Below the pieces are notes generated by a model. That model ran no database searches, was not told the origin of the DNA, and worked only from the letters and a program-made list of their open reading frames with translations. Of a stretch of 64,000 bases of DNA, positions 2-50,656 are shown one piece after another. Position 1 is the first letter of the stretch, and each line of letters opens with the position of its first letter. The translations under genes were made by a program, and so were the position numbers. Source of the stretch: Macrostomum lignano (Eukaryota); assembly GCA_002269645.1 (NCBI GenBank), contig NIVC01001255.1, forward strand, positions 62,001 to 126,000, given 5' to 3'.

Positions 2-3000
2 CCGCATGCCGACAAGCTCGAGCGACTCGTTGCCAAACTTGACGAACTGCGTCAGCTGTTGCGCCGGAAGTGGCGCGAAGCCGAGCAGAAGCTCATTTGC
101 GTCGGGCAGCTCGGCGTCTACCGGAGCGCCGCCGAGGCCACTTTGGAAGGCCTGGAAAAAGCGGCAGCCGCTGCCAAGCGCATCCGATCCTCGTGTGCCC
201 ACATTGCCAGCCAGCAGGCCGCTGAAGACGCCAAGGAGCGGCTGCGGCTGCAGGCATCGGCGCCGGCCGCGACTCGTCTGGCCGAGGGTCGCGAGCTGCT
301 CAAGAAGGTGCGCCGGTTGGCAATGTCTACAGACCCGGCGACGGAGCCTCCGACTAGCGGCCGGGATGACTCGCTGCGTCAGAGGCCGGCCAGCTACGCG
401 GCCGAGCTGGAGTCCCGTTTGACCAGCTGCTCCGAGACGGTGCGGACGACCGAGGACTGGCTCGCCGGGCTGTGCGGCTTCTTTGACTGCTGCGCCGCGG
501 TGAGAGGCCAAGTCTACGCCCGATTTTAGTTGTTAGATGCTAAACCAGCTTAAAAAAGCAAGTTAAAAAATGTGCAATCATAAGTCGTCATCACTACAGA
601 CTGGCTCAATTTTCTCAATATCAATCAACAGATGATGCGTTGGTATTCGTTATGCCTGGAGCAGCTACCGGTTGAACTGCTGGAGCATCATCAGCGAATG
701 CGGCCGGCCCAGTCGCTGACCCTGACAAGCCGCTGGGTGGAGGCAGTCCGGCCGCTGCTGTCCAAGTATCCGTGTCCGAAGCCGGCCCAGCTGGACGAGC
801 TGCGCCAGGCGATGGAGCCGGTTGAAAGCAGGGAGGCGCGGAGAGAGGCGGCGCAACTGCTGCGCAGGTGAGACACACTTGAAACCAATCGAACCAGTGA
901 CTGCCTTGAGGGTTGATGCGAGCATATTCATCTGCGTACTAACCATGTCCAGCTCTGCTTAACTTGCCCATTGGGCTAGTGAACAGCAAAAAATATGTGC
1001 GAATGTCGCACCTTCAAAAACTATAGTGGTCGACGTAGCGCTGAACTTATGGCAAAGACGTCTAACATGAATTTCATGATAAGCGGACCTAATTTGGTGC
1101 TAAATTAAGCATGGCAAAGGTGAAGCTTGCAGTCTCTTACACAAATTTTAACGCCTCAGCCAAACCCACTCCAAATCGCAGAGTGGAGCTGCTGATTCGG
1201 CTGCTGGACAAGCGGAGCATCACAGTGGGCGAATTTCGCGAGTTGCTCGATTGGCGCAACAAATCTGCCTCGTCGCAGGGCGACCCCGACTTGGCCGGCC
1301 TCGACCCAGGGCCTGGCGATGGCTCTTTCGGCGACGCGCAAGACGGCGGCGACTTCTTCGAGGCCGAGCTGCGCGATCTGGAGGACTCGATTTCTCAGCA
1401 CAATGCTCAGCCCGGCGCTAGCGGAATCGGCGGTGGAGGTGACACCGGCTCGAACTTGACCACGGGATCCTCAGACACGCGCAAGTACAGGAAGAAGCGA
1501 GAAACCAAGCCACAGCCGCACCAGATGCAGCAGCCGCCGCAACAGGCGCAGCAGCAGCCCGCAGTTCGCGAGTACCGCCCCCGATCGAATCTGGGCGTCG
1601 AAATCGACGATGAAGTTCGTGGAGGACCGCATGGTGTTTCGCTGGAGTCACAACCCAAGGCCGAGACTGTGTGGAAGTTCCTCGAAAACATGGCCAGTCC
1701 GCACTCGTCGGATTCCCTTCCAGCTTCATACAGGACCGATGAGAGAGACGACTCACTGAACCAGCCGACATCGTCACTTGAGTATCCATTCGGCAGCTAT
1801 GTCAAGCGCGACAACCCCGCCGCCGCGGCCGCGGCCAATTCCACTCGATCGGCTGCTCAACCAACCAGCGGAGTGCAACCTCGAGCAGCTGGTGGGCCCA
1901 GATCCGCTCGCAGCCTAGGCAGTGGGTCCCATGGTGCGCGGTCGCTGTCTGACTTAGTTGGCGAGCTAAAGGAGCTTGGCGATGCACTGTTCAGCGGCGG
2001 CGGCAAGCAGAAGCAGCCGCCGGTGTCACGAAAGCAACAAAAAGTGTCAAAGCAGCAGCAGCAGCAGAGAATGCGACCGAGTGGTGATTATACCGGCTCT
2101 TTACCAATGAGAGGCAGCCGCTCTGTGGAGAACCTGTTCGTTAGTCCGGAAGGCGACCCAATGCGACGGGTGGCCACTCCGAGGCTTCTTGGTAACTCAA
2201 ATGCCGACGTTTCGGCGACGCTGCCCTCGCGTGCTGCATCGGAGAGGCTGCTCCTGAATGAAAACGACGATGCAATATGGGATCCGCCGCTGGCGCCGGA
2301 GGAGTTTGCACTGCTGGCTGCGGAGCCGCCACTGCCAAGCCAGAAGGCTGCTGGACCAGCCGGTAAGAAAGTGAAATCGGACAGCGGGTTGAGCGCGGTC
2401 TCAGCAGTGGATTCGGCGCTGAACAACTTCCGTCAGGATCGACAGGACAGGGAGAGACTAGAACGTGACCGGCGTCTGCAAGAGTTGCTGCAGGAGGCTG
2501 ACAGGAGTCTGGCTCAGGCCGAGGACAACCAGTCTGACTCGGGACTCAGCGACCACACAATGCCGCGCTCTGTGATCGACTTTCGCAGCCGGGCCGCTTG
2601 GGGCAAGACCAAGCCAACGATGCAACAGCCAGCACCAAATCCGGCGACTCATTCTTCTGCCACCGCCGCCGCGCCGCCAACTCGCAATCAAGACAGCGGC
2701 AGGCCCAGCTCCGAAACAGATGATGTCGACCAAATCATCAACGACATTCAAGATATCACCACCGGACGGTATCCTAGACAAGAGCAGCAGCATCCGCTGA
2801 ACTCGCATCATCCTCACCCGAGTAACCAACTGCTGGCACCTCCGAGACGAGGTCGCGCATACAGCGACTACGAGTACGATAGCAATGACTTGGCGACTGA
2901 GCAGCAGCTTCGGCCGCCGCAGCAGAAAGAGCAGCCGCAGCAGCAGTCCAGGCAGCAGCATCCGCAGCGGCCACCGTCACAGCAGTCGTCGCAGTTTCGG

Positions 3001-3258
3001 CGCCACACGCCGTCTTTGACGCGCATGTCGGACACGGACTTGGCCGGCGGCGGACTGTCCGGATCGCCTTCGCCGTCGTCGTCATTGCTGCAAATGCGGC
3101 CGTCGCGGCACTCGGACAATTTCCTGCTGAGCGCGAGGAGCCGCCGCATCCGGCGCCAGATCGCACAGCCCTCTGCTGGTGTCGCCGCCGCCGTCGATTC
3201 TGGAAGACGACTCGGACGGCCACTCTGGAGGCCTGCGCCGGCCACAGCAGCGGCATGA
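2..3258 (+). CDS. 3' part of a large coiled-coil (possibly spectrin-repeat-like) protein with a long Q/S/P-rich disordered tail; 5'-partial
   Basis: Frame open from base 2. Exons <1-499 (GCG|GTGAGA), 632-867 (CAACAG|ATG ... AG|GTGAGA) and 1182-3258 (CGCAG|A GTG GAG) have matching phases 0 and 2. The true end may be 3439 (see finding). Family not recognised. Confidence 0.7.
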
Positions 3259-4786
3259 GCAGAGGCCAGATAGCAGCTATCTCAGCGTGCGGAGGTACAA
3301 CCGTGACACGCCGGATGCTATCAATCCGCTCAGCGACGGCGAACTGCAGGAGCGTTACCAAGGCAACGGGGGGACAGCCAGGCACCAGCAGAAACAGCTT
3401 CAGCAGCCAGAACACACAGGAAACAGTGTGTTTTACTGATATTTTTAACTGTATTCTACTAATTCGGTCCTAATATTATGGGGCACTTCTCCGATACTTT
3501 AATATTGTTCGTAATCTTCGTTTTCCGATTCAAAATAATTGTTGCCGCGAAATCAGAATGCTTTTCGTAGTTTCCTGAGCGAGTTCATACGAGTCGCTGC
3601 TGCACTGTATATTGTAAAAAACAATGTTTCTGCGACTACATATTTATTGGCAAACACGATAGTGCTTTAAATCCAATGTAATGTTCCCATCAAATCAACT
3701 TTGAAGGTTCCCAGTTTTTTCCACATAAATTGCCTATTCTTTCCATTTGCAAAAGGAATCCGGAAAATATCAAATGGCCCATTTTTTCATGACTCTTCAG
3801 CGCCTTGATAGGACGGCATTAATCTACTATACTGTTACCTGCTTCTGCTCCCAAAAATATACAGCAAAGATATTTAAAAAATAAAGACTAAAACGTTAAC
3901 TTACATCATTTACTGTGCTTATGCAACCAATGACTGCATGTGTTTTAGTAACCGGATGCATGCAACGACTACTCAGCAGGAAAGTACGTGAGCCCAACTT
4001 CTTTGGCCTCTTTTCCTGGGCTTTATCATAAAGGGATTATATTACCTATTCAGATAAACAAATCCAGCAGATTTGCCTGCTGCATGCACTGCCTACCCTG
4101 CCCATCAAAATCTATTAAATTGCACAGCTAAGAAGCTGAGATTGTTTCGGGCTTACGTCGTAAATGTGCATGTCCGTAGATCCGAAAGGTTTTACTTATA
4201 TTTTCCCTGCACTCCTAGGTCGATTGCCTCAGCACCTATGATTATGGAGTTGGGAACTGCTCTCTATAAATTACACACATTTTATCAGTTACGTCTGCTC
4301 ATGCATGTAGTGGCCACAACTGTGACTCACTGCTAGTTTACTTTTAGTATTTTAATTATTAAACGTACATGTTAGGAGTACAATGCAAAAATTTGCATCT
4401 TATTTTTATATGCGATTTTTATTTCTGCCCTTCAGTTTTTAAGTTCTAGAGATATTTAAATCCATATCGATATCTACGTAACGGGTGTCCCAAAAAGGGT
4501 AACACTTTGTGCGCTAACTGTGCGTAATCCGTTTTGCCTATCACCCTGTAATTCAACAGTTCGACAGAAAGCATCTGTAATTATTGAGTTATTGAGTTAT
4601 TGATTTTTATACGGCAAAGATTGTCTGTGGCCGCTGTCTATGGCAAAGTTTGACAGAAAATGAGCAAGCGTACAATTCTAAGCTCAATAACTCGCCTCCT
4701 GAATAAGTTTTTGCGGCCGTACATTTTCTGGGGAAAAACTTACAGATGTTTTTCTATCGAACTGTTGAATTACAGGGTGATAGGCA

Positions 4787-5067
4787 GCACGCGAAGGCGT
4801 ATTCAGCATGCCAGTGAAGTATGAGACAGACTAGGCCCATGGGCCAAGGTCTGCGATGCTTCACGCCTGCCCCTATCTTCAGCAGGTCAAGGCTGGTGGG
4901 AGGTCTGCACCCTCTATTTGCCTCTGGCAGCCGCAGACCCCCCCCCCCACGCTGTCTCGCAAGTCGACCCAGGGTACTCGTCCCCGCGTGTGTTCAAGGC
5001 TGCTGGACAGACTGGGCTCCGGCGCTGGCGACCCTATCCAGTGGCTTCGGCCGAATTTGGGTATGCG
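4787..5067 (+). ncRNA. Candidate HDV-like self-cleaving ribozyme
   Basis: P1 GCACGCG(4787-93)/CGCGTGT(4985-91); P3 GGG/CCC around L3 TACTCGT; P1.1 AC/GT; 11-bp P4 (4997-5007/5037-5047); J4/2 CGAA (5052-55); P2 ACCCA/TGGGT. Folded by eye. Confidence 0.65.
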
Positions 5068-5413
5068 GGTCTGGCTCGCCAACCTGCAGGCCGTGGTACT
5101 GCTCAACGTACTCTCTAATGCCTAAGGTGTTGACCGTGCCGATGGGCTGGAAGGCCGGGGAGTAGTCCGGTCGCTAGCGGTCCCCCTCCTGGTGTCGGGC
5201 CAGCCTTGAGGGTTCTATTGGCCTACTGCCTGGTCAGGTGGAGCGGCCGGGTGGGTACCGCGCCCCTTTGAGGGTAGCCCACCAACCTTTATCATGGCCT
5301 TCGAGCCGACTATGGAAAACCGTCCATAGCGACGCGTCGGCCGTTCAGGGACTAGCGGAATGGGCGCTGTGTCCCCTCCGGGACAGCCCTGCAGCTAAGT
5401 CAAGTAAGTAAGT
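4787..5413 (+). mobile_element. Short non-autonomous non-LTR retroposon (RTE-like/SIDE-like), 627 bp
   Basis: Perfect 14-bp target-site duplication CAGGGTGATAGGCA (4773-4786, 5414-5427). GC-rich, structured body with a 3' stem-loop and a (TAAG)n tail. No credible ORF. Confidence 0.85.
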
Positions 5414-5629
5414 CAGGGTGATAGGCAAAACGGATTACTCGCAGTTAGCGCACAAAGTGTTACCCTTTTTTGGGACACCCGTTATACGATCAATAATTTT
5501 TCTTGCCTAAATGATCTGAGTTATAGATATAGAAATAATATGCTTGAAGAATATTTCTATGCTTGAACTATATATGCTTGAACTATGATGATTTTCCCGA
5601 CGCCAATTCCGCAACCAAATAATAAAAGT

Positions 5630-5723
5630 ATACTGCTACTACTACTACCTACTACTACTATTACTACTACTACTAAACTACTACTTCTTACTATACTACT
5701 ACTACTCTACTACTACTACTACC

Positions 5724-5768
<45 letters not shown>

Positions 5769-5772
5769 TTAA
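5630..5772. repeat. Compound (TAC)n/(AAT)n microsatellite
   Basis: Directly visible trinucleotide runs. Confidence 0.9.
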
Positions 5773-6433
5773 TAATGCTGATACTTCAAAGCCATGTCTT
5801 ACTAGAACTCTAAGAATAAATCCCCTGCACAATTTTAACCAACTTCCGTGAAATATCTTGCTTTGAGTTGTAATCGTGTACCTAAATAGAAAAGTACTAA
5901 TAATACAATTGAAGAATAAGCTAAAGACATAAAAAGTAGAATAAGCAATATTCAAACCAATACGTTATATTATTAACTCTTAAAAGAGAGCCAGAAATAT
6001 TTTGCCGTGAATTTTTTTATTAAAATGTTGCTCTGTTTGATTTTTATTTGTCGTGGAAGTTTTCTAGGAAATCTTGTCTAGACTTTTCACAAGGAATTCT
6101 GCAGCTTTCGCGCGTACTCATGCTTTAAGTTACTTGAAAAATGAATGCTTCAGAAAACTTACACTGATAATCGCAGTGAAAGCGTTTACATTTCTTCTAA
6201 CTCAAGGTTTTCAGAACTATAATTGCGAATATAAAAATAAAAATACTACTCTACCTAGATACAAGCTCCGACTCCGATAAAGACTTAAAGTTTAATCGTT
6301 ATTCGTTTTTTAGATCGCCGGTTTAGTAGTCTAAAAGCCTACATACCTAAGCCTAAGCTTTAATTTTGCCCATGTGTACTGCAATTTCTACTTGGATGCT
6401 GTCAAGGTTTTCATTTTCACCGTGCCAATTGCA

Positions 6434-9400
6434 ATGAGTTTCTGGCCTTTTAGTACACTCAATGGCTACACGCGTGCCCAAACTGTCTCAAGTAGTCCAG
6501 ACAATTCCACCGTTTTTTACTTTGGACCCAAAAATCCTAACCGAAAGAAAAAGCGGAAATCTAAAAACTCGCCAGACCATTCTGCTTATCCACAAAACAA
6601 TCAGGATAATGCCACATCAAGTAGATATGAACATGAGTTGCTTATTGTAAAAAAGCAAGATCGTTTTGAATATTATCGTGTGCCTTTATTAAAGAATGAA
6701 AATCTTCATACTGTTGCCATGAAGTATGGATGCTCGTTAGTAAATTTAGTATTTTTTCTATGGAGTGATTTATACTTTCTATTTTTTAATCCTAACTTCT
6801 GTTTGTAGTTTCTAACAAAAATTCAATAGTTGGCTTTAGTTTCTTAGTTATAATTTCTTTTTTATTTTTTTCTTCCTTTTCTATGGAGTATGTCTATCTG
6901 TTTACTTTCTTATCTTTCTTATCTTATAATCTTTCTATTATTCTTTATTAGTCATTGTTTTACCTTTTTCATTTTAGGAATGGGTCAATTTCGTGACCTA
7001 AATAGGCTAGTTGGCCTCTACTTGACTAGATTAGCCATGTATTATGTATTTGTATACATGTTTATAAGCTAATAGCAAATTAAATTATTTTTTTACTATT
7101 TAAATGTTTTTTTATAAATAAACCATAAAAACAAATTTTATACAAAAAAAATATTGATATTTTATAGACTGTAGTCCAGTGTTAGGCACTAGTCCATTAA
7201 TCAGTAAGCATTAATCTGTTAATAAGTGTTAATAAGCATTAAGATTTTTCATTAACATTAATGGCAATGTCAATGACCAACAATACAAAGAAAAAACAAA
7301 AATATGTCTAATGAGAAGTTATAACATTACAAATGTTTTTGAATTTACCTAAGTGCCTTATTCATCTCTGTTTATAACAATGATCATGCAAATGTAACAA
7401 CTTATTAATGAACTTTAATAAAGAATTAAAATTGTGAAATTTATTGCTCTCATGTAAACATCAATCACTTTGATTCACTTCTTTAACAATCTTTTGTAAC
7501 TTTCTACTACGCCTGCTAATGCTACTAAAGCAACCTTCCTTTTTGTATTTTATTATTAACTAATTAGCTTAGTTAGTTAATAATAATCTAAGCTAAGCTT
7601 AATTAGCTTTAGCTTCAAAAATTACTTTTTACCACATATATACTTTTAGTAGTATTATGTGTACAAGTTTTTTTAATTATTATTTATTACTTTTTAGCTT
7701 GTAAATCGCTTAGATGACCCCTGTGTTTTGCTAAAAAAATGGAAAAGCAAACACAGTGAATTATGAAGTCTGTTTTGGAAAAAAAGTGCAAGATTTATCT
7801 ATTTTGTGAGTTAGGCCTAACTTTAATGGATTAACACTTATTAAGGATTATCAGTTAATTTTCAGTTAACTTTAATGAAATTAAGAGTTAATAAGTTAAG
7901 ATTTTTTGTTTTAATGCTAATGTTTTTGCTATTAACAGAAGTTAAGATTTTCATTAATGGTGCCCAACACTGCTATAGTCTATAATGACAACTAATGGCA
8001 ATCACTATAATAACTTTAAATTATAATAAATATATAACTTTGCTATATCCTAACAAAAATTAGATAAAAACTGGAGCAAAATTTAGATGACCTCTGGACA
8101 AGAGTAGTTTTTTCATCCAGAAATTGATCCGGTATTTCATCCACTCATTTCTCTACTGTTTAAGATGGATCAACCAGATCAAATACCAGATTAAATTTTA
8201 CTTATATCCTCCCTACAGTTTTGAGTCAATATGGTTTATGTAAAGCAGATTTTCTATTCTAAATAGTCATGGAGATTATAGAAGGAGCCTCCAAGGGAAA
8301 ACTGATGGAAGATGACCCCATTATACGATGATCCCCTTAGGCAATCTGTGGCATATACCTAGTTAGCATCAGAAGATGAAGCACACTAGGTAGATGCATC
8401 CAAACAGGTTGTTAACATATCAGAGCTGGATGGGACTAACAACATGCTGAACCTAATAGTTTGCAATTAATAACATAAGAATTTAAAGTTAACTAAAAAG
8501 TAAAATTTTGTGGTCCCCTTTGGTGTCCAATTTGGAGCCCTTAATCTGTAGTGTTAGTCTATATAATGGTTTATCTCTTAATCTGTGGTGGAGCCCCCAG
8601 TGTGTACTGTTAGCAATCTATGGTGGTTTATGGAATGTATAGTAAACAAAATATATGGAATGGATGCATGGATATGGAATATTTTGCCAGGTGTGAATTT
8701 TGAAGCCGGAATAACTGCACTAGACTGTGTTATGTGTTTCCCATTTTTTCATTTCTTATTAGTAATCAATTTTATACTGCCAAATCTATCTCTGTGTCTA
8801 TAGAGATCTGGCTTTTTATCTGGAAATTCACCCAGTGTTCTATCCATTAAGAAACCCAGTTGTGTTGGTCCAGTTTTTTATCTGGATATTCACCGCATAT
8901 TTCATCCTGCACTGCTGATCCAGATTTGATCTGGTTTGTCATCCGCATTTACATCCACTAAAAACTGGAGATTTTTCCAGATGTACCCCTGGAGCTAGAC
9001 CCAGATGAAAGTACTCAAAATTCACACTTTCATCCAGAATGTTAACAATTCATCCGGCTTTTGTCTGGCATTTTAAATGGGCATTTTATATTACAAACTG
9101 GATGAAAATCCAGATTTATGCCTGGAGAAATTGGCGGATGATTGGGCCAGGTGGGAAATATAATAGTCTTAGCAGTGAGATATTTGCTCAAAATTTTAAC
9201 GAAATAGGTTTATATATATTAACACAATATATAATATATATTATTATATCTTAACCAATCATTGTCTGAACCAAAGATACTAGAATAACTAGATGGTCCA
9301 CTCTGCCATATATACTTGGCAAAACAGCTTTCTACTTTCAGTTCAGTAGCAAAGAAGAATACAAAAGCTATTTTATAATAATAAGGCAGCTGAGATGACT

Positions 9401-12400
9401 TCAATAAGTTTAGAAGCCAAGCTTGCAGATGTAAACAGCTTGCTAATTAGTTCAGCCAAAATGTACATTAGCCACTGAAATGTACAGGGCAGATTCAGGC
9501 TGGAACAACCAAAGAAGGTAATAAAATTAGGTTGTGGACGGGGTTAGAGGTTCTATGAGGAGCTGGAGGGTTTAATAGCTTGGGGGGGGTAAGAGCCAAT
9601 AAATAAGCTTTGTTTTTAAAAATACATTAAAATGCTTCTGTTTAACTTACTACTGAACTGAAAGTAGCTGGCTCGCAAATGTGCCGAGTGGCCTATCTAG
9701 TTATTCTAGTATCTGTGGTCTGAACTAATATAGCTAGTTATTAAAAATACTATTGTTCTATAAATATGATTTTTATTAGAGCCAGAATGTCAAAAGGACA
9801 TCTTATTTTTTACCCTCTATTATAGCTAAGCCATGTTCATAGGCTCAAATGTTGGGATCAAAGCCCCTATATGTTTATAACACTAATCTGAATCTGGCTA
9901 ATAGAAATGACTTAATATCTTAATATTATAATATTTAATCTTTATGCAATATTTATGATTATAAGCTTGGCTTAGGCAATTTATTTTTATAACCTATCAC
10001 AATTCTGGTAGTAATATCAGTTAAAGAAAAAAAATTTTTTTTTTGGTGTTTCATAGTAAAGAAATTTATCATATCTCTCTAACTGATAGTATTTATTTTC
10101 CTCACAGGTGTGGGAGCTAAAGCGAGCCAACCACCTCTGGGGACTGCAGGATGTTCACGCACTGCCCAGTTTAGTGATTCCTGCTCCAAAGAACAGCTAC
10201 AGAGCGGAGCTGCTAGCAAAGTCTGGAGGCCGGCTAGTAGGTGAGAATCAGCAGTCTCTGCAGGCAGGTGGCAGTCGCGATCCAGATGGTGCTGATGAGG
10301 ATTTGCAGGACACGTCTGGCGACCTCGCCAGCGGTGTGTTGGAAGTCGGGTCTGCCTCTGCGGGAGCGACTGGCAGTGACGACCAAAGACGGCCGGTAAA
10401 AATTCTTTGGAGATTCTGCCATGCTGACAGATTTATCAGATTTCCCAAAAAACTTTGGGAGATTTTCTCTCAAGTTTGCGGATTTCAGTGCATTTTGGGG
10501 GGTTTTTGTGAAGTTTGAGGATTTCTGTGAAGTTTAGGGATTTCTGTGTAGTTTGGGGATTTCTGTGTAGTTTGGGGATTTCTGTGTAGTTTGGGGATTT
10601 CTGTGAAGTTTGCGGATTTCTGTGTAGTTTGGGGATTTCTGTGTAGTTTGGGGATTTCTGTGTAGTTTGGGGATTTCTGTGTAGTTTGGGGATTTCTGTG
10701 TAGTTTGGGGATTTCTGTGTAGTTTGGGGATTTCTGTGAAGTTTGCGGATTTCTGTGAAGTATGGGGATTTCTGTGTAGTTTGGGGATTTCTGTGAAGTT
10801 TGGGGATTTCTGTGTAGTTTGGGGATTTCTGTGTAGTTTGGGGATTTCTGTGTAGTTTGGGTATTTCTGTGTAGTTTGGATATTTTGTGTAGTTTGGGGA
10901 TTTCTGTGTAGTTTGGGGATTTCTGTGAAGTTTGAGGATTTCTGTGAAGTTTGGGGATTTCTGTGTAATTTAGGGATTTCTGTGAAGTTTGGGGATTTCT
11001 GTGAAGTTTGGGGATTTATATGCAGTTTGGGGATTTCTGTGTAGTTTGGGGATTTTGTGTAGTTTGGGGATTTCTGTGTAGTTTGGGGATTTCTGTGAAG
11101 TTTGGGGATTTCTGTGAAATTTGAGGATTTCTGTGAAGTTTGGGGATTTCTGTGTAGTTTGGGGATTTCTGTGTAATTTAGGGATTTCTGTGAAGTTTGG
11201 GGATTTCTGTGAAGTTTGGGGATTTATATGCAGTTTGAGGATTTCTGTGTAGTTTGGGGATTTTGTGTAGTTTGGGGATTTCTGTGAAGTTTGAAGATTT
11301 CTGTGTAGTCTAGGGATTTCTATGCATACATGCGCAACTGCTGGCCGACCTGGCCGATCCGGCCACCGTAAATCGTGGCTGACCAGAGGTAAGTCGCAAA
11401 ATTGAGTCAACCAAAAACAGAAAAACACAAGAACCAAGAAAGGCAAGAGGAAAGCGAAAGAAAGAGCAGTTCAGGGAAAATGGTGAAGCAAAAGAAAAAC
11501 AATTCGCAAAAGAAGCAAACTAAGTTGTAAAAATAATCAGGTAAGTCGCAAAAAGGATCAGGTAAGTCGCAACAGGAATCAGGTAAGTCGCAAAAGGGTT
11601 AGGTAAGTCGCAAAAAGGATTAGGTAAGTCCAAAAAGGATTAGGTAAGTCGCAAAAAGGATCAGGTAAGTCGCAAAAGGGTTAGGTAAGTCGCAAAAAGG
11701 ATTAGGTAAGTCACAAAAAGGATTAGGTAAGTCGCAAAAAGGATTAGGTAAGTCCAAAAAGGATTAGGTAAGTCGCAAAAAGGATTAGGTAAGTCGCAAA
11801 AAGGATTAGGTAAGTCGCAAAAAGGATTAGGTAAGTCCCAAAAAGGATTAGGTAAGTCGCAAAAGGATTAGGTAAGTCGCAAAAAGGATTAAGTAAGTCG
11901 CAAAAAGGATTAGGTAAGTCGCAAAAAGGATTAGGTAAGTCGCAAAAAGGATTAGGTAAGTCACAAAGGGTTAGGTAAGTCGCAAAAGGATTAGGTAAGT
12001 CGCAAAAAGGATTAGGTAAGTCGCAAAAAGGATTAGGTAAGTCACAAAGGGTTAGGTAAGTCGCAAAAGGATTAAGTAAGTCGCAAAAAGGATTAAGTAA
12101 GTCGCAAAAAGGATTAGGTAAGTCGCAAAAGGGTTAGGTAAGTCGCAAAAGGATTAGGTAAGTCGCAAAAAGGATTAAGTAAGTCGCAAAAAGGATTAGG
12201 TAAGTCGCAAAAGGGTTAGGTAAGTCGCAAAAGGATTAGGTAAGTCGCAAAAAGGATTAGGTAAGTCACAAAGGGTTAGGTAAGTCGCAAAAGGATTAAG
12301 TAAGTCGCAAAAAGGATTAAGTAAGTCGCAAAAAGGATTAGGTAAGTCGCAAAAGGGTTAGGTAAGTCGCAAAAGGATTAGGTAAGTCGCAAAAAGGATT

Positions 12401-15400
12401 AGGTAAGTCGCAAAAAGGATTAGGTAAGTCACAAAGGGTTAGGTAAGTCGCAAAAGGATTAAGTAAGTCGCAAAAAGGATTAAGTAAGTCGCAAAAAGGA
12501 TTAGGTAAGTCGCAAAAGGGTTAGGTAAGTCGCAAAAGGATTAGGTAAGTCGCAAAAAGGATTAAGTAAGTCGCAAAAAGGATTAGGTAAGTCGCAAAAA
12601 GAAGCAACTAAGTCGCAATAAGAGGGAAGTAAGTCACAATCAGAGGCAATCAGGGGGTAGTAGGTGCAAGTGTGGCAAGAGAGCAAAAACAGAATAGAAG
12701 CCTTCAACCACAGGCAAGATCTTTGAAATCAGAAGCCCGCGTCAACAGTTTCCCATTGATTTCTTAAACTCTGGAGCAGGGGTTGGCAAACTCTGGCTCG
12801 CGAAGCCCCTCTATCTGGCCCTCGCTCCTCGGGTTCTTTGAAACTTCCTAACTACGAGTAGCAAGGTTGGTGTCTCTTCAACTCTCATCTCTCTCTTCTT
12901 CTCTACCTTGCCTCCCCTCTTCTCTCTCTCCCCCTTTTCCCTCTTCTCTCTCCTCTCATTTTTACTCTCCTCTCTTCTCCCCCTTTCTCTCTACCCTTTC
13001 TCCTCAATGCCCTCTTCTCTCCTCTTATCTTCAGCAAAAATATGTGCATATTTTCTTACTTCAAAGTAGAGGGAATAGAAGATTAGAGATAAGCAAACAG
13101 AGGAGAGGCGAGCGATGCGATGGGAGAAAAGATAGAAGAGGAGAGAAAAGCTGAGGGAGGAAAAAGAGATGAGAGAGAAGAGGAGATGAGAGAAAAGAGG
13201 AAAGAAAAGATGATAGATGAGATCAGAAGAGAGGAAAGAGGAAAGAGGAGAGAGTAGATGAGAGAAGAGAGGATAAAGAGGAGATGAGAGGAGAGTGAAG
13301 AGAGGAGAGATGAGAGAGTAGAAAAGAGAGGAGAGATAATGAGAGAGTAGAGTGGAGAGAGACGAGAGGGAAGATAAGATGAAAGAGTAGAGTGGAATGG
13401 AGAGAGACGAGAGGAGAGATAAGAATGTAGAGAGGAGACAGAAGAGATAGGAGAGGAGAGGAAAGAGAGAAGGGATAAGGGATGAGAGAGAAAAGAAAAA
13501 GAGGATGAGAAGATTGAGGAATGGAGAGAATTTGCAAAGGCCTCAAATCTTAGTTTAACATGCATTACTCCCATCTTTGCCTTTTTCCTAACTGTTAACA
13601 AGTTTTTGTTTGAGCATGACTTCAAATTTAGAATCTATGCAAAAATAGTTCCGGGAATTAGAATTCAGTGGTTTAAAAATCTGTGGGTTTTCACAGCTTG
13701 TATCTCTACTGGATTTGTATTCTGCATCTGATGAGCCATCTGAATCAGGGCTCTCATCTTCCATGCCAAATCGTTCTTGAGCTATAGGTCACACTGTATT
13801 CACTTCACTTACTTCTGGACATTCATGAATCATGACTTTTGTAGTATGCTCACTACACTGTACTGACAATTTACTAATTGCTTCATGCCGCCACTAGATG
13901 ACACACTGATTAGCTGTTATAAAAACGCGGAATCTGCACGCAGCACTAATTAGCTGGCGAGGCATTTAGCTTTAAAAAAAATAGTCATAGTTACTCCTGC
14001 CGTTTACCTAAAGTTTTTGCTTGGCTCTTTCATAGGTAAGTCGCATTTTTTATCGAAAACTAAGTCGCACGGCCAGCGTAATTTCAGAAGTTGCGCATGT
14101 ATGTTTCTATGAAGTTTGGGGATTTCTGTGAAGTTTGAGGATTTCTGTGTAGTTTGGGGATTTCTGTGAAGTTTGGGGATTTCTGTGTAGTTTGGGGATT
14201 TCTGTGTAGTCTGGGGATTTTGTGTAGTCTGGGGATTTCTGTGTAGTTTGGGGATTTCTGTGTAGTTTGGGGATTTCTGTGAAGTTTGGGGATTTCTGTG
14301 TAGTTTGGGGATTTCTGTGTAGTTTAGGGATTTCTGTGTAGTTTGGGGATTTCTGTGTAGTTTGGGGATTTCTGTGTAGTTTGGGGATTTCTGTGTAGTC
14401 TGGGGATTTTGTGTAGTTTGGGGATTTCTGCGTAGTTTGGGGATTTCTGTGTAGTTTGGGGATTTCTGTGTAGTTTAGGGATTTCTGTGTAGTTTGGGGA
14501 TTTCTGTGTAGTTTGGGGATTTCTGTGTAGTTTGGGGATTTCTGTGTAGTCTGGGGATTTTGTGTAGTTTGGGGATTTCTGTGTAGTTTGGGGATTTTGT
14601 GTAGTTTGGGGATTTCTGTGTAGTTTGGGGATTTCTGTGAAGTTTGGAGATTTCTGTGAAGTTTGAGGATTTCTGTGAAGTTTGGGGATTTCTGTGTAAT
14701 TTAGGGATTTCTGTGAAGTTTGGGGATTTCTGTGTAGTTTGGGGATTTCTGTGTAGTTTGGGGATTTCTGTGTAGTCTGGGGATTTTGTGTAGTTTGGGG
14801 ATTTCTGTGTAGTTTGGGGATTTTGTGTAGTTTGGGGATTTCTGTGTAGTTTGGGGATTTCTGTGAAGTTTGGAGATTTCTGTGAAGTTTGAGGATTTCT
14901 GTGAAGTTTGGGGATTTCTGTGTAGTTTGGGGATTTCTGTGTAGTTTGGGGATTTCTGTGTAGTTTGGGGATTTCTGTGTAGTTTGGGGATTTCTGTGAA
15001 GTTTGAGGATTTCTGTGTAGTTTGGGGATTTCTGTGAAGTTTGGGGATTTCTGTGTAGTTTGGGGATTTCTGTGTAGTCTGGGGATTTTGTGTAGTCTGG
15101 GGATTTCTGTGTAGTTTGGGGATTTCTGTGTAGTTTGGGGATTTCTGTGAAGTTTGGGGATTTCTGTGTAGTTTGGGGATTTCTGTGTAGTTTAGGGATT
15201 TCTGTGTAGTTTGGGGATTTCTGTGTAGTTTGGGGATTTCTGTGTAGTTTGGGGATTTCTGTGTAGTCTGGGGATTTTGTGTAGTTTGGGGATTTCTGCG
15301 TAGTTTGGGGATTTCTGTGTAGTTTGGGGATTTCTGTGTAGTTTAGGGATTTCTGTGTAGTTTGGGGATTTCTGTGTAGTTTGGGGATTTCTGTGTAGTT

Positions 15401-18400
15401 TGGGGATTTCTGTGTAGTCTGGGGATTTTGTGTAGTTTGGGGATTTCTGTGTAGTTTGGGGATTTTGTGTAGTTTGGGGATTTCTGTGTAGTTTGGGGAT
15501 TTCTGTGAAGTTTGGAGATTTCTGTGAAGTTTGAGGATTTCTGTGAAGTTTGGGGATTTCTGTGTAATTTAGGGATTTCTGTGAAGTTTGGGGATTTCTG
15601 TGTAGTTTGGGGATTTCTGTGTAGTTTGGGGATTTCTGTGTAGTCTGGGGATTTTGTGTAGTTTGGGGATTTCTGCGTAGTTTGGGGATTTCTGTGTAGT
15701 TTGGGGATTTCTGTGTAGTTTAGGGATTTCTGTGTAGTTTGGGGATTTCTGTGTAGTCTGGGGATTTTGTGTAGTTTGGGGATTTCTGTGTAGTTTGGGG
15801 ATTTCTGTGTAGTTTGGGGATTTCTGTGTAGTTTGGGGATTTCTGTGTAGTTTGGGGATTTTGTGTAGTTTGGGGATTTCTGTGAAGTTTGGAGATTTCT
15901 GTGAAGTTTGAGGATTTCTGTGAAGTTTGGGGATTTCTGTGTAATTTAGGGATTTCTGTGAAGTTTGGGGATTTCTGTGAAGTTTGGGGATTTATATGCA
16001 GTTTGGGGATTTCTGTGTAGTTTGGGGATTTCTGTGAAGTTTGGAGATTTCTGTGAAGTTTGAGGATTTCTGTGAAGTTTGGGGATTTCTGTGTAATTTA
16101 GGGATTTCTGTGAAGTTTGGGGATTTCTGTGAAGTTTGGGGATTTATATGCAGTTTGAGGATTTCTGTGTAGTTTGGGGATTTTGTGTAGTTTGGGGATT
16201 TCTGTGTAGTTTGGGGATTTCTGTGAAGTTTGGGGATTTCTGTGAAGTTTGAGGATTTCTGTGAAGTTTGGGGATTTCTGTGTAGTTTGGGGATTTCTGT
16301 GTAATTTAGGGATTTCTGTGAAGTTTGGGGATTTCTGTGAAGTTTGGGGATTTCTGTGTAGTTTGAGGATTTCTGTGTAGTTTGGGGATTTCTGTGTAGT
16401 TTGGGGATTTCTGTGTAGTTTGGGGATTTCTGTGAAGTTTGGGGATTTATATGCAGTTTGGGGATTTCTGTGTAGTTTGGGGATTTCTGTGTAATTTAGG
16501 GATTTCTGTGAAGTTTGGGGATTTCTGTGAAGTTTGGGGATTTATATGCAGTTTGAGGATTTCTGTGTAGTTTGGGGATTTTGTGTAGTTTGGGGATTTC
16601 TGTGAAGTTTGAGGATTTCTGTGTAGTTTGGGGATTTCTGTGAAGTTTGGGGATTTCTGTGTAGTTTGGGGATTTCTGTGTAGTCTGGGGATTTTGTGTA
16701 GTCTGGGGATTTCTGTGTAGTTTGGGGATTTCTGTGTAGTTTGGGGATTTCTGTGAAGTTTGGGGATTTCTGTGTAGTTTGGGGATTTCTGTGTAGTTTA
16801 GGGATTTCTGTGTAGTTTGGGGATTTCTGTGTAGTTTGGGGATTTCTGTGTAGTTTGGGGATTTCTGTGTAGTCTGGGGATTTTGTGTAGTTTGGGGATT
16901 TCTGCGTAGTTTGGGGATTTCTGTGTAGTTTGGGGATTTCTGTGTAGTTTAGGGATTTCTGTGTAGTTTGGGGATTTCTGTGTAGTTTGGGGATTTCTGT
17001 GTAGTTTGGGGATTTCTGTGTAGTCTGGGGATTTTGTGTAGTTTGGGGATTTCTGTGTAGTTTGGGGATTTCTGTGTAGTTTGGGGATTTCTGTGTAGTT
17101 TGGGGATTTCTGTGTAGTTTGGGGATTTCTGTGTAGTTTGGGGATTTCTGTGAAGTTTGGGGATTTCTGTGTAGTTTGGGGATTTCTGTGTAGTCTGGAG
17201 ATTTTGTGTAGTTTGGGAATTTCTGTGTAGTTTGGGTATTTCTGTGTAGTTTGGGGATTTCTGTGTAGTCTGGGGATTTTGTGTAGTTTGGAGATTTCTG
17301 TGTAGTTTGGGGATTTTGTGTAGTTTGGGGATTTTGTGTAGTTTGGGGATTTCTGTGTAGTTTGGGGATTTCTGTGAAGTTTGAGGATTTCTGTGAAGTT
17401 TGGGGATTTCTGTGTAATTTAGGGATTTCTGTGAAGTTTGGGGATTTCTGTGAAGTTTGGGGATTTCTGTGAAGTTTGGGGATTTATATGCAGTTTGGGG
17501 ATTTCTGTGTAGTTTGGGGATTTTGTGTAGTTTGGGGATTTCTGTGAAGTTTGAAGATTTCTGTGTAGTCTGGGGATTTCTATGAAGTTTGGGGATTTCT
17601 GTGAAGTTTGAGGATTTCTGTGTAGTTTGGGGATTTCTGTGAAGTTTGGGGATTTCTGTGTAGTTTAGGGATTTCTGTGTAGTTTGGGGATTTCTGTGTA
17701 GTTTGAGGATTTTTGTGTAGTTTGGGGATTTCTGTGAAGTTTGGGGATTTCTGTGAAGTTTGAGGATTTCTGTGTAGTTTGGGGATTTTGTGTAGTTTGG
17801 GGATTTCTGTGTAGTTTAGGGATTTCTGTGTAGTTTGGGGATTTCTGTGTAGTTTGAGGATTTCTGTGTTGTTTGGGGATTTCTGTGAAGTTTGGGGATT
17901 TCTGTGTAGTTTGGGGATTTCTGTGTAGTTTGGGGATTTCTGTGTAGTTTGGGGATTTCTATGTAGATTGGGGATTTCTGTGTAGTTTGGGGATTTCTGT
18001 GTAGTCTGGGGATTTTGTGTAGTTTGGGGATTTCTGTGTAATTTGGGGATTTCTGTGTAGTTTGGGGATTTCTGTGTAGTTTGGGGATTTATGTGAAGTT
18101 TGGAGATTTCTGTGAAGTTTGAGGATTTCTGTGAAGTTTGGGGATTTCTGTGTAATTTAGGGATTTCTGTGAAGTTTGGGGATTTCTGTGAAGTTTGGGG
18201 ATTTATATGCAGTTTGGGGATTTCTGTGTAGTTTGGGGATTTTGTGTAGTTTGGGGATTTCTGTGAAGTTTGGGGATTTCTGTGTAATTTAGGGATTTCT
18301 GTGAAGTTTGGGGATTTCTGTGAAGTTTGGGGATTTATATGCAGTTTGGGGATTTCTGTGTAGTTTGGGGATTTTGTGTAGTTTGGGGATTTCTGTGAAG

Positions 18401-21400
18401 TTTGGGGATTTCTGTGAAGTTTGAGGATTTCTGTGAAGTTTGGGGATTTCTGTGTAGTTTGGGGATTTCTGTGTAATTTAGGGATTTCTGTGAAGTTTGG
18501 GGATTTCTGTGAAGTTTGGGGATTTCTGTGTAGTTTGGGGATTTTGTGTAGTTTGGGGATTTCTGTGAAGTTTGAAGATTTCTGTGTAGTCTGGGGATTT
18601 CTATGAAGTTTGGGGATTTCTGTGAAGTTTGAGGATTTCTGTGTAGTTTGGGGATTTCTGTGAAGTATGGGGATTTCTGTGTAGTTTGGGGATTTCTGTG
18701 TAGTCTGGGGATTTTGTGTAGTCTGGGGAATTCTGTGTAGTTTGGGGATTTCTGTGAAGTTTGGGGATTTCTGTGTAGTTTGGGGATTTCTGTGTAGTTT
18801 GGGGATTTCTGTGAAGTTTGAGGATTTCTGTGTAGTTTGGGGATTTCTGTGTAGTTTGGGGATTTCTGTGAAGTTTGGGGATTTCTGTGAAGTTTGAGGA
18901 TTTCTGTGTAGTTTGGGAATTTCTGTGTAGTTTGGGGATTTCTGTGTAGTTTGGGGATTTCTGTGAAGTTTGGAGATTTCTGTGAAGTTTGAGGATTTCT
19001 GTGAAGTTTGGGGATTTCTGTGTAATTTTGGGATTTCTGTGAAGTTTGGGGATTTCTGTAAAGTTTGGGGATTTCTGTGAAGTTTGGGGATTTATATGCA
19101 GTTTGGGGATTTCTGTGTAGTTTGGGGATTTTGTGTAGTTTGGGGATTTCGGTGAAGTTTGAGGATTTCTGTGTAGTTTGGGGATTTCTGTGAAGTTTGG
19201 GGATTTCTGTGTAGTTTGGGGATTTCTGTGTAGTTTGGGGATTTCTGTGTAGTTTGGGGATTTCTGTGTAGTTTGGGGATTTCTGTGTAGTCTGGGGATT
19301 TTGTGTAGTTTGGGGATTTCTGTGTAGTTTGGGGATTTCTGTGTAGTTTGGGGATTTTGTGTAGTTTGGGGATTTTGTGTAGTTTGGGGATTTATGTGAA
19401 GTTTGGGGATTTCTGTGAAGTTTGAGGATTTCTGTGAAGTTTGGGGATTTCTGTGTAATTTAGGGATTTCTGTGAAGTTTGGGGATTTCTGTAAAGTTTG
19501 GGGATTTATATGCAGTTTGGGGATTTCTGTGTAGTTTGGGGATTTTGTGTAGTTTGGGGATTTATGTGAAGTTTGGGGATTTCTGTGAAGTTTGAGGATT
19601 TCTGTGAAGTTTGGGGATTTCTGTGTAATTTAGGGATTTCTGTGAAGTTTGGGGATTTCTGTGAAGTTTGGGGATTTATATGCAGTTTGGGGATTTCTGT
19701 GTAGTTTGGGGATTTTGTGTAGTTTGGGGATTTCTGTGAAGTTTGAAGATTTCTGTGTAGTCTGGGGATTTCTATGAAGTTTGGGGATTTCTGTGAAGTT
19801 TGAGGATTTCTGTGTAGTTTGGGGATTTCTGTGAAGTATGGGGATTTCTGTGTAGTTTGTGGATTTCTGTGTAGTCTGGGGATTTTGTGTAGTTTGGGGA
19901 ATTCTGTGTAGTTTGGGGATTTCTGTGAAGTTTGGGGATTTCTGTGTAGTTTGGGGATTTCTGTGTAGTTTGGGGATTTCTGTGAAGTTTGGGGATTTCT
20001 GTGTAGTTTGGGGATTTCTGTGTAGTTTGGGGATTTCTGTGAAGTTTGGGGATTTCTGTGAAGTTTGAGGATTTCTGTGTAGTTTGGGAATTTCTGTGTA
20101 GTTTGGGGATTTCTGTGTAGTTTAGGGATTTCTGTGTAGTTTGGGGATTTCTGTGTAGTTTGAGGATTTCTGTGTAGTTTGGGGATGTCTGTGTAGTTTG
20201 AGGATTTCTGTGTAGTTTGGGGATTTCTGTGAAGTTTGGGGATTTCTGTGTAGTTTGGGGATTTCTGTGTAGTTTGGGGATTTCTGTGTAGTCTGGGGAT
20301 TTTGTGTAGTTTGGGGATTTCTGTGTAGTTTGGGGATTTCTGTGTAGTTTGGGGATTTCTGTGTAGTTTGGGGATTTTGTGTAGTTTGGGGATTTTGTGT
20401 AGTTTGGGGATTTATGTGAAGTTTGGGGATTTCTGTGAAGTTTGAGGATTTCTGTGAAGTTTGGGGATTTCTGTGTAATTTAGGGATTTCTGTGAAGTTT
20501 GGGGATTTCTGTGAAGTTTGGGGATTTATATGCAGTTTGGGGATTTCTGTGTAGTTTGGGGATTTTGTGTAGTTTGGGGATTTCTGTGAAGTTTGGGGAT
20601 TTCTGTGAAGTTTGAGGATTTCTGTGAAGTTTGGGGATTTCTGTGTAATTTAGGGATTTCTGTGAAGTTTGGGGATTTCTGTGAAGTTTGGGGATTTATA
20701 TGCAGTTTGGGGATTTCTGTGTAGTTTGGGGATTTTGTGTAGTTTGGGGATTTCTGTGAAGTTTGAAGATTTCTGTGTAGTCTGGGGATTTCTATGAAGT
20801 TTGGGGATTTCTGTGAAGTTTGAGGATTTCTGTGTAGTTTGGGGATTTCTGTGAAGTATGGGGATTTCTGTGTAGTTTGGGGATTTCTGTGTAGTCTGGG
20901 GATTTTGTGTAGTTTGGGGAATTCTGTGTAGTTTGGGGATTTCTGTGAAGTTTGGGGATTTCTGTGTAGTTTGGGGATTTCTGTGTAGTTTGGGGATTTC
21001 TGTGAAGTTTGGGGATTTCTGTGTAGTTTGGGGATTTCTGTGTAGTTTGGGGATTTCTGTGAAGTTTGGGGATTTCTGTGAAGTTTGAGGATTTCTGTGT
21101 AGTTTGGGAATTTCTGTGTAGTTTGGGGATTTCTGTGTAATTTAGGGATTTCTGTGAAGTTTGGAGATTTCTGTGAAGTTTTGGGGATTTCTGTGAAGTT
21201 TAGGGATTTCTGTGTAGTTTGGGGATTTCTGTGTAGTTTGGGGATTTCTGTGTAGTTTGGGGATTTCTGTGTAGTTTAGGGATTTCTGTGTAGTTTGGGG
21301 ATTTCTGTGTAGTTTGAGGATTTCTGTGTAGTTTGGGGATTTTTTGTGTAGTTTGGGGATTTCTGTGTAGTTTGGGGATTTCTGTGTAGTCTGGGGATTT

Positions 21401-22011
21401 TGTGTAGTCTGGGGATTTCTGTGTAGTTTGGGGATTTCTGTGAAGTTTGGGGATTTCTGTGTAGTTTGGGAATTTCTGTGAAGTTTGGGGATTTCTGTGT
21501 AGTTTGGGGATTTCTGTGTAATTTAGGGATTTCTGTGAAGTTTGGAGATTTCTGTGAAGTTTTGGGGATTTTTGTGAAGTTTTAAGTTTTCTGTAAAGTT
21601 CTGCTAAAAGTTCTGTCTACTGTTACTCTTAGTAGCCACAGTACGAGTTTTAACGCAAAGTTTATTTATCATTTTGTTCAGGTGAGCCTCCGCCAGGCCA
21701 TGTCATCCAGCGATTCTCTCACCGCCACCGACTGCGACAGGTTCCTGCGCACCCTGGACGCCGACTTGGAGCAGATTAAACAGTCCACCTGCTTCCTGAA
21801 GGAGTCACTGCCCGAGGCTGCCAGCTATTTAAACACTCTGTCAGTTTTCCCTCCCCATTCGTCCGGCTACTTGGTGCCCAGCTGGCTTCGCCGGTTGAAA
21901 GGCAGCGGCGTGGACGGTGGCCTGTCGTGGCGCGGTGCCGTCTGCCTGGTGTGTGTCCTGTGCCTGCTGGTGCCGGCTCTGCTGTACCTGCTCATTGTTC
22001 GCGGCCGGTAG
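6434..22011 (+). CDS. LYSMD3: LysM-domain membrane protein, LYSMD3/LYSMD4-like
   Basis: Exons 6434-~6739, 10108-10395 and 21682-22011, with phase-0 junctions. LysM motif ENLHTVAMKYGCS..VWELKRANHLW..ALPSLVIP; conserved FLRTLDADLEQIK and GVDGGLSW before a C-terminal TM helix (GAVCLVCVLCLLVPALLYLLIV). LYSMD3 versus LYSMD4 orthology cannot be resolved. Confidence 0.88.
7177..7972. mobile_element. hAT-type MITE in LysM intron 1
   Basis: TIRs CAGTGTTAGGCACTA / TGGTGCCCAACACTG (13/15). 8-bp TSD CTGTAGTC/CTATAGTC (7/8). AT-rich interior with ATTAA subterminal repeats. Confidence 0.75.
9272..9717. mobile_element. MITE of the CACAGATACTAGAATA family (P or hAT superfamily), copy 1
   Basis: TIRs CAAAGATACTAGAATAACTAGAT / ATCTAGTTATTCTAGTATCTGTG. 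Perfect 8-bp TSD GTCTGAAC (9264-71, 9718-25). The interior matches 38298-38748. Confidence 0.9.
10500..11324. repeat. 19-bp satellite (AGTTTGGGGATTTCTGTGT), left block
   Basis: Period of 19 counted directly. Starts ~100 bp after the intron-2 donor. Confidence 0.95.
11538..12640. repeat. 20/21-bp tandem array (GGATTAGGTAAGTCGCAAAAA) inside the TIR element
   Basis: About 50 units, an expansion of the element's subterminal TAAGTCGCA motif. Confidence 0.95.
12777..13545 (+). mobile_element. Charlie/hAT-like MITE with CT-rich then GA-rich tracts, nested in the TIR element
   Basis: Left end CAGGGGTTGGCAAAC preceded by CTCTGGAG. The first ~80 bp match the copies at 23781, 25211 and 26599. Right end degenerate and approximate. 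Confidence 0.6.
14104..21590. repeat. 19-bp satellite, right block (~390 units) with higher-order structure
   Basis: Same unit as the left block. Ends ~90 bp before the intron-2 acceptor at 21680-21681. Confidence 0.95.
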
Positions 22012-22184
22012 CCCGTCTGCTGTCCCAGACAGCTTGTGATTTATCAACAGCGTTTTGTGCTCTCTTCCCTTTCCTCTGTCTGACTGCCTGCCTGCAATTT
22101 AAGCTGCTGAGGTTGCAGCATTTATTGAAATTGTGCTCTGATGTGTGGGATTGTGTGCTCTGTTGTAGTTTGGATGCCCAATGT

Positions 22185-23260
22185 CGGATGCTAATGTACA
22201 TTCTTCAATCGGATGCTAATGTACATTGTTCAATCGGATGCTAGTGTACATTGTTCAATCGGATGCTAGTGTACATTGTTCAATCGGATGGTAATGTACA
22301 TTGTTCAATCGGATGCTAGTGTACATTCTTCAATTGGATGGTAATGTACATTGTTCAATCGGATGCTAGTGTACATTGTTCAATCGGATGGTAATGTACA
22401 TTGTTCAATCGGATGCTAGTGTACATTGTTCAATCGGATGCTAATGTACATTGTTCAATCGGATGCTAATGTACATTGTTCAATCGGATGCTAATGTACA
22501 TTGTTCAATCGGATGGTAATGTACATTGTTCAATTGGATGGTAATGTACATTGTTCAATCGGATGGTAATGTACATTGTTCAATTGGATGCTAATGCACA
22601 TTGTTCAATCGGATGCTAATAATGTACATTGTTCAATTGGATGCTAATGTACATTGTTCAATCGGATGCTAATGTACGAGTACATTGTTCAGTCGGATGC
22701 TAATAATGTACATTGTTCAATCGGATGCTAGTGTACATTGTTCAATTGGATGCTAATGTACATTATTCAATCGGATGCTAATAATGTACATTATTTAATC
22801 GGATGCTAATAATGTACATTATTCAATCGGATGCTAATAATGTACATTGTTCAATCGGATGCTAGTGTACATTGTTCAATCGGATGCTAATAATGTACAT
22901 TGTTCAATCGGATGCTAATGTACATTGTTCAATCGGATGCTAATGTACATTGTTCAATCGGATGCTAATAATGTACATTGTTCAATCGGATGCTAATAAT
23001 GTACATTGTTCAATTGGATGCTAATGTACATTGTTCAATCGGATGCTAATGTACATTGTTCAATCGGATGCTAATAATGTACATTGTTCAGTCGGATGCT
23101 AATGTACATTGTTCAATCGGATGCTAATGTACATTGTTCAATCGGATGCTAATAATGTACATTGTTCAATCGGATGCTAATGTACATTGTTCAATCGTGT
23201 GTTAGTGTACATTGTGCAATTGGATGCTAATGTACATTGTGCAATTGGATACTAGTGTAC
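22185..23260. repeat. 25-bp (28-bp variant) minisatellite AATCGGATGCTAATGTACATTGTTC
   Basis: Period of 25 counted, with +AAT variants. Starts ~175 bp after the LysM stop codon. Confidence 0.95.

Positions 23261-37737: not shown

Positions 37738-50656
<12,919 letters not shown>

Follow-up and report, generated by a model that had tools for sequence, protein, structure and literature searches.

A 627-bp retroposon in the genome of Macrostomum lignano, a flatworm with a free-living habit, is probably an internally deleted copy of a two-ORF LINE, the first ~230 nucleotides of which are predicted to fold into a large HDV-like ribozyme. The element occupies positions 4787-5413 on the forward strand of the window, by which we mean the whole 64,000-nt stretch of DNA that was analyzed (contig NIVC01001255.1, positions 62,001 to 126,000). 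It is a SIDE-like derivative with a whole 5′ UTR, a 12-codon fusion mini-ORF and a 3′ UTR with its tail. Homology of both ends to a full-length LINE, identical 5′ termini, target-site duplications (TSDs), and helices that are conserved with compensatory changes are all observed. Coordinates below refer to the window unless another locus is named, and all features of the element lie on the forward strand.

The boundaries of the insert can be placed to the base. Two identical copies of a 14-bp TSD, CAGGGTGATAGGCA, flank it at 4773-4786 and 5414-5427, and the GC-rich inserted sequence begins with G4787, directly 3′ of the left copy. The host is a foldback or MITE-like element of ~365 bp with nested inverted repeats (left part at 4479-4786, remainder at 5428-5484), the right inverted-repeat arm of which is interrupted by the insert. 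Arms of 60 nt (95% complementary), 41 nt (93%) and 21 nt (95%) can be recognized in the host, and no second copy of it was found within the window. Excising the insert together with one TSD copy restores a foldback inverted repeat of 60-90 nt (4479-4570 versus 4751-4786 plus 5428-5484). Because the excision restores the arms, G4787 is fixed as the first inserted base without any RNA model. The original prediction of an ORF-less, TSD-flanked retroposon of 627 bp is thereby confirmed, with an exact duplication and the same boundaries.

In the remainder of the window, metazoan exons (of thrombospondin/fibronectin-II, galactosyltransferase and Slo-channel type) are accompanied by fragments of Ty3/gypsy pol and by numerous minisatellites. 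A fragmented Ty3/gypsy pol (RT, RNase H and integrase) lies at 51756-54957 on the minus strand and is 79% identical to M. lignano BOX15_Mlig014814g1. Very large minisatellite arrays are found at 10473-11321, 11521-12622, 14104-21582, 22184-23265, 32691-34249 and 45085-48371. One array consists of a 19-bp unit in ~396 copies with an extreme GC skew; other units measure 21, 25, 30 and 42 bp, and the 42-bp array falls within a 509-aa open frame.

A full-length LINE with the same ends as the insert, designated L001, is present on M. lignano contig NIVC01001873.1 (3707-9540, 5,834 bp). It is flanked by an 11-bp TSD, GCGGTAAGGAA, and starts with GCACGCG directly after it; when the LINE is excised, the CCHC knuckle of a gypsy gag is restored. 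Its ORF1 is 459 aa long; its ORF2, which is frameshifted, has an endonuclease domain of the apurinic type (Exo_endo_phos), RVT_1, RNase_H and a C-terminal Cys/His motif. The interval 3696-9551 of this contig is a case of nested dead insertions, the LINE copy, with at least one frameshift in ORF2, lying inside the gag zinc knuckle. BLAST aligned bases 1-397 of the insert (4787-5183) to the 407 nt of L001:3707-4113 with 93% identity and bases 558-623 (5344-5409) to L001:9461-9537 with 78% identity, up to the common end ...CCCTGCAGCTAAGTCAAGTAAGT. Between these two blocks lie the rest of the 5′ UTR and the mini-ORF. Part of that stretch can be aligned to the 5′ UTR of L003, a sister LINE found on a Logan contig, both ORFs of which are intact and the ORF2 of which is 64% identical in amino acids to that of the L001-type LINE: window positions 5218-5258 are 78% identical to L003 515-555.

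That the short element derives from an autonomous non-LTR element had been proposed, and the two ends in common with L001 bear this out. The clade suggested for the partner was RTE, which we ruled out. An RTE-clade partner is expected to encode endonuclease and RT in one long ORF that is free of RNase H, with ORF1 missing or very short, whereas the LINE identified here carries RNase_H (PF00075) in ORF2 and an ORF1 of 459-525 aa.

The core of the predicted ribozyme starts at the very first base of the element. GCACGCG (4787-4793) pairs with CGCGUGU (4985-4991) to form P1, opening with a G4787·U4991 wobble, and cleavage is predicted to fall directly 5′ of G4787. P3, formed by GGG 4972-4974 and CCC 4982-4984, encloses the 7-nt L3 UACUCGU (4975-4981). 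The two nucleotides that follow the P1 3′ strand, G4992 and U4993, pair with C4977 and A4976, respectively, as a 2-bp P1.1. This much agrees with the original prediction, including the G-U first pair and the P1.1 pair made by the A in L3. For comparison of the fold we used three heads (the insert, L001 and L003) from two independent lineages; the closer relatives P0122, P0123 and P0124 were left out, as they yielded either no DNA or contigs that do not include the 5′ UTR. The first base of P1 is the first base of the element in both TSD-defined copies, the insert and L001, and the homologue of G4787 is the base with which the L003 contig opens.

When the window/L001 lineage is compared with L003, every pair of P1, P1.1, P3 and P2 is seen to be intact. 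All six Watson-Crick pairs of P1 are kept, with positions 3 and 4 doubly changed (A-U to C-G and C-G to U-A), and the first pair, G·U in the insert and L001, is G-C in L003, where P1 comprises 6 bp. Both pairs of P1.1 are doubly changed, to U181-A195 and C180-G196, and are thus compensatory. P3 (GGG/CCC) is invariant, and L3 again has 7 nt in L003 (UCUCCGU), keeping U at position 1 and G at position 6. The order P1, J1/2, P2, P3, L3, P3′, P1′, P1.1, P4, J4/2, P2′ is complete in L001 and L003; the window copy has no P4, and its P2 and P3 have a G in common. Covariation of the pseudoknot helices rests on ~5 compensatory pairs in three sequences from two lineages. We consider it quite likely that an HDV-like double pseudoknot at the element's 5′ end is real for this LINE family. 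The window copy itself may be a weakened ribozyme, because it is without the P4 hairpin and has three, not four, Gs at the P2/P3 junction.

More distant relatives were also inspected. In L004, L005 and L006 (~37% amino acid identity), the first 7-8 nt pair with a site 150-190 nt downstream (1-8/154-161, 199-205/~385 and 119-125/~305, respectively). Neither a convincing P3/L3/P2 nor a clean HDV core was seen there, and we set these three aside as support for the ribozyme; their terminal pairing may be a diverged ribozyme or some other 5′ closing helix. A further 80 metagenomic LINE relatives (30-40% amino acid identity) are too distant for comparison of UTRs, and a loose HDV descriptor gave background-level matches among them, none at a 5′ UTR.

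J1/2 is a peripheral domain of 173 nt (4794-4966). RNAfold predicts a closed multi-branch domain in the insert, L001 and L003, and its closing helix (4797-4799/4958-4960 and 4804-4807/4951-4954) shows one compensatory pair, G-C to A-U in L003. The hairpin that had been foreseen within a long J1/2 is found at 4814-4863 (GUAUGAGA...AAGGUCU.CGAUGC; 3734-3783 in L001 and 28-77 in L003), and it is kept in the sister LINE with two compensatory pairs. The primary sequence of the hairpin is far more conserved across lineages than that of the ribozyme stems, which suggests a protein-binding role or one at the DNA level, as part of a promoter. When 597 kb of fetched loci were scanned with a covariance model built for this hairpin, only the three known copies matched, and pattern scans of metagenome and prokaryote-genome collections for the conserved J1/2 block gave 0 matches. 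The J1/4-P4 segment TCAAGGCTGCTGG (4994-5006) recurs inside J1/2 at 4887-4899 with 12/13 bases identical.

The 3′ part of the fold is best described in a revised register. A homologous block, CUG[G/A]GC..CGGCGC, is complementary to the P2 5′ strand, which we now place at CCCAG 4968-4972 (formerly ACCCA 4967-4971) and pair with CUGGG 5012-5016. In L003 this helix becomes CUCAGA/UCUGAG, with one compensatory pair (C-G to U-A). Alternatively, CCAG could pair with CUGG 5003-5006 in a second register. From the sequence comparison, the P2 3′ strand is more likely located within 5003-5016 than at 5058-5062, where it was initially placed; folding energies do not discriminate between the P2′ alternatives. 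In the segment 4994-5016, J1/4 (UCAA) would be followed by what is left of P4, by J4/2 and by the P2 3′ strand, and in the window copy the revised P2 would have to share G4972 with P3. P4 varies among the heads: a 12-nt insert forms a small hairpin in L001, L003 has 11 bp, and the window copy has none. The constrained MFE fold of L003 gives P2, P3 and its 11-bp P4 exactly in HDV order. J4/2 is GGACAGA in the window versus GCUGC in L003, and candidates for the catalytic cytosine are C5008 (CAGA before CUGGG) or C5000 (GCUG before CUGG), with C228 in L003.

Downstream of the rest of the 5′ UTR (5017-5293), a mini-ORF, MAFEPTMENRP* (5294-5329), joins the first two codons of ORF1 in frame to approximately the last nine codons of ORF2. 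In L001, ORF1 starts MATN... and ORF2 ends ...FPTEDNAVDRTGRPP*; the mini-ORF reads like an ORF1 start and an ORF2 end and appears to mark the deletion junction (...ATCATGGCCTTCGAGCCGACT...). One breakpoint lies 6 nt past the ATG of ORF1 and the other ~30 nt short of the stop of ORF2, with both UTRs whole and the frame kept. What the insert retains is a 5′ UTR of ~500 nt, the 12-codon remnant, and ~100 nt of 3′ UTR with the tail.

The 3′ UTR contains a stem (CAGGG 5346-5350/CCCTG 5387-5391, within 5346-5391) enclosing the invariant TAGCGGAATGGGCG at 5353-5366, identical in the insert, L001 and L003, and this stem with its enclosed motif is likely the site recognized by the RT. A terminal motif and short repeat tail, GCTAAGTCAAGTAAGTAAGT, occupies 5394-5413; its counterparts are GCTAAGTCAAGTAAGTCAA in L001, GCTAAGTCAA in L003 and GATAAGTCAAGTCAA in L088. 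The module common to the insert, L001 and L003 is accordingly the stem, TAGCGGAATGGGCG, and then GCTAAGTCAA with one or two AGTAA/AGTCAA units, and a related form of it is recognizable in L088, a relative with 47% identity. A (TAAG)n tail had been proposed; the actual end is the conserved ...CCCTGCAGCTAAGTCAA motif followed by those one or two extra units. Conservation of the 3′ module fits a "stringent" LINE, the RT of which would read its own 3′ UTR, and would explain how the short derivative could be mobilized. Since the 3′ module of the insert is only 78% identical to that of L001, the parent of the short element belongs to a subfamily other than that of L001.

With both ends common to an autonomous element and the coding region deleted, the insert is of the SIDE type. 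Its head contains no tRNA, and Rfam detected no 5S or 7SL head; a Pol III SINE is ruled out on these grounds, in agreement with the original prediction that no Pol III promoter is needed. A non-autonomous "family" had been envisaged, of which a single short copy was found in the window plus 45 kb of other M. lignano DNA. BLAST revealed no second copy in the window, a protein-database search with a spurious 114-aa ORF of the element retrieved no other copies, and when the window ORF at 1111-3258 was looked up by exact match, with allelic or empty sites in view, no record came back.

Descriptor and covariance searches address how distinctive the fold is. A descriptor tailored to the fold as originally drawn had two other matches in 128 kb (both strands), and a looser HDV-like descriptor matched approximately once per 25-30 kb over the 1.2 Mb scanned, which gives a chance of roughly 2-4 × 10^-5 for a match at any single base fixed in advance. 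A descriptor match alone is weak evidence, because the looser descriptor matches often and chance matches can look good. One very good match, at L002 8413-8645 (minus strand), lies antisense to a gypsy gag start and the 5′ LTR region and combines a 7-bp P1, a 170-nt J1/2, an 8-bp P2, a GGG/CCC P3 and CUAA before P2′; it may be due to chance, and it shows how good such matches look. The original prediction called for a search with HDV-like models. Rfam covariance models gave no ribozyme family at gathering score in the whole window and none at E ≤ 10 in 4700-5500, and the HDV-like Rfam models did not match any of 19 related loci, these models being less able to detect a fold with pseudoknots and a 173-nt J1/2 insert.

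Several other explanations have to be weighed against a ribozyme-headed, internally deleted LINE. One of them is that the fold exactly as first drawn is the active one in the window lineage, with an 11-bp P4 (4997-5007/5037-5047), a P2 of ACCCA 4967-4971 and TGGGT 5058-5062, and C5052 of the CGAA at 5052-5055 as the catalytic base. All these pairings do exist in the window; an extra G in L001 would extend P2 to 6 bp (ACCCAG/UUGGGU) and leave one spare U where CGAA is directly followed by TT in the window, and under a shifted alignment CUAA of L003 comes to stand opposite CGAA. Against this, 12 nt interrupt the P4 in L001, L003 has no equivalent of it, C5052 aligns with U in L003 in the MAFFT alignment, and near the CGAA equivalent L003 has nothing complementary to its P2 5′ strand. 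A nearer conserved partner of UGGGU exists in both lineages, GGGU 5059-5062 pairing locally with ACCC 5031-5034, and the CGAA and UGGGU region (5037-5062), which lies in the rest of the 5′ UTR, fits better as a separate downstream stem-loop. We regard the unrevised fold as very unlikely: its P1, P3, L3, P1.1 and J1/2 hairpin stand, and its 11-bp P4, C5052 and P2′ at 5058-5062 are not conserved in L003. It is also conceivable that a GC-rich sequence fits an HDV-like descriptor by coincidence, as the frequency of matches to loose descriptors would allow. The match here is anchored at one pre-specified base, the chance of which is ~10^-5 to 10^-4 (with descriptors written after the fact), and homologous LINEs conserve the fold with compensatory changes, which makes coincidence extremely improbable.

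A more substantial alternative is that the 5′ structure serves as an internal promoter, IRES or protein-binding domain, and that the uniform 5′ end results from initiation at G1 and full-length reverse transcription. This would agree with a J1/2 hairpin conserved in sequence beyond the needs of pairing, as expected of a DNA- or protein-binding signal, with the negative Rfam result, and with the more than one candidate position for the catalytic C. Heads that are both promoter and ribozyme are known (L1Tc Pr77, PMC3383444), so that promoter activity is plausible anyway. A promoter, however, needs no RNA helix at exactly +1 adjoining a GGG-N7-CCC hairpin, nor does it account for P1 and P1.1 pairing kept through double changes or for the order P1-P2-P3-P1′-P1.1-P4-P2′, which is specific to the HDV fold. 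As a replacement for the ribozyme we find this explanation unlikely; any of the three roles could coexist with one. The last alternative concerns the deletion: a full-length LINE may have inserted and later lost ~5.2 kb by genomic deletion, no short RNA ever having transposed. The single copy in the DNA searched and the empty collection scans are in line with such a history, and the 78% identity of the 3′ module to L001 is neutral on it. Breakpoints that hug the ORF ends, leave the UTRs whole and keep the frame would result from random deletion in only a few per cent of cases, and their position at the ORF boundaries with the frame kept argues for a selected mobile derivative. Loss by genomic deletion is nevertheless quite possible, if not the history we favor.

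For the ribozyme-headed, internally deleted LINE, we infer a cycle of co-transcription, self-cleavage and mobilization in trans. The element would be transcribed inside a longer host or read-through transcript, and the ribozyme would cut just 5′ of G1, so that no upstream promoter would be needed for the 5′ end to be defined. Its layout would be P1, the 173-nt J1/2, P2/P3/L3, the 2-bp P1.1, a variable P4, and P2′ at ~15-25 nt after P1.1. A LINE-encoded protein would then bind the 3′ stem (CAGGG...TAGCGGAATGGGCG...CCCTG) and the terminal AAGTCAA motif, and target-primed reverse transcription into a nicked target would produce the 11-14-bp duplications. The short element would be mobilized in trans by the LINE proteins. 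A broader proposal is that RNase H-group LINEs of Macrostomum carry a ribozyme with a J1/2 that has a second job (promoter, translation or protein binding) and give rise to SIDE-type parasites, dispersed throughout the genome, with a translated mini-ORF. We put this forward tentatively and consider it rather doubtful as a whole; if it were true, the parasites would for the first time extend ribozyme-headed short retroposons beyond rDNA-specific elements and trypanosomes.

Many features of the Macrostomum head have precedents. In the natural HDV-like ribozymes of R2 elements, the J1/2 loops measure 216-498 nt, and P4 can be absent; cleavage at the element 5′ end by such ribozymes is also known for R4, Dong, Baggins and L1Tc (PMC3774820). 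These LINE ribozymes share with the Macrostomum element the placement of P1 at the first nucleotide, their cleavage freeing the element RNA from a co-transcript, and the silkmoth R2 ribozyme resembles it in combining a large J1/2 with a dispensable P4 (PMC3774820). Baggins1, similar to the Macrostomum LINE, is an endonuclease-RT-RNase H carrier without site specificity. Structured J1/2 domains activate large HDV-like ribozymes (PMC4908430). In the drz-Agam-2 type, with its P1.2 domain, a helix-closed J1/2 domain brings P1 and P2 together, as it would in the Macrostomum head (PMC4908430); unlike that type, the Macrostomum J1/2 has ~170 nt, is multi-branched, and contains one hairpin that is unusually conserved in sequence. 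Compared with the known HDV-like ribozymes of LINEs, the present case comes from a free-living flatworm and another LINE lineage, has no similarity to Rfam HDV-like families and a non-canonical J4/2 candidate, and includes a sister lineage, L003, with a G1-C pair and a 6-bp P1.

Parallels also exist for the short derivative. SIDEs of Drosophila R2 and the R2/R1 hybrid SIDEs (Eickbush & Eickbush 2012, PMC3414825) join a 5′ ribozyme to a 3′ UTR recognized by the RT, as the 627-bp insert appears to do. Drosophila SIDEs reside in rDNA target sites, whereas the insert is dispersed, inside a foldback element; unlike them, it has kept an in-frame mini-ORF and its 5′ UTR in full, and it is known from one copy. 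NARTc of Trypanosoma cruzi, the partner of which is L1Tc, is likewise a non-autonomous element that shares a ribozyme-bearing 5′ head with its partner (PMC3383444). It differs in that its head, a compact ribozyme of 77 nt, also acts as a promoter, and in that it is a protist element of the ingi clade and ends in a poly(A) tail. From flatworms, the ribozymes so far reported in association with LINEs or SINEs are the hammerhead, twister variants and the R2 ribozyme (PMC8501958, PMC3774820). Within the literature searched, a ribozyme-headed LINE with a SIDE-like derivative is, as far as we can tell, new for a non-R2 flatworm LINE.

If cleavage holds, the elements with HDV-like ribozymes would come to include a LINE from a flatworm that belongs to neither R2 nor RTE, and a dispersed, internally deleted derivative would be added to the known set as well. 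For annotation, such elements explain ORF-less repeats with sharp 5′ ends and can be recognized by a marker that combines the 5′ head with the 3′ CAGGG...CCCTGCAGCTAAGTCAA module. Because M. lignano is a transgenic model, what the ribozyme, the conserved J1/2 hairpin and the 3′ stem contribute to retrotransposition is testable in vivo.
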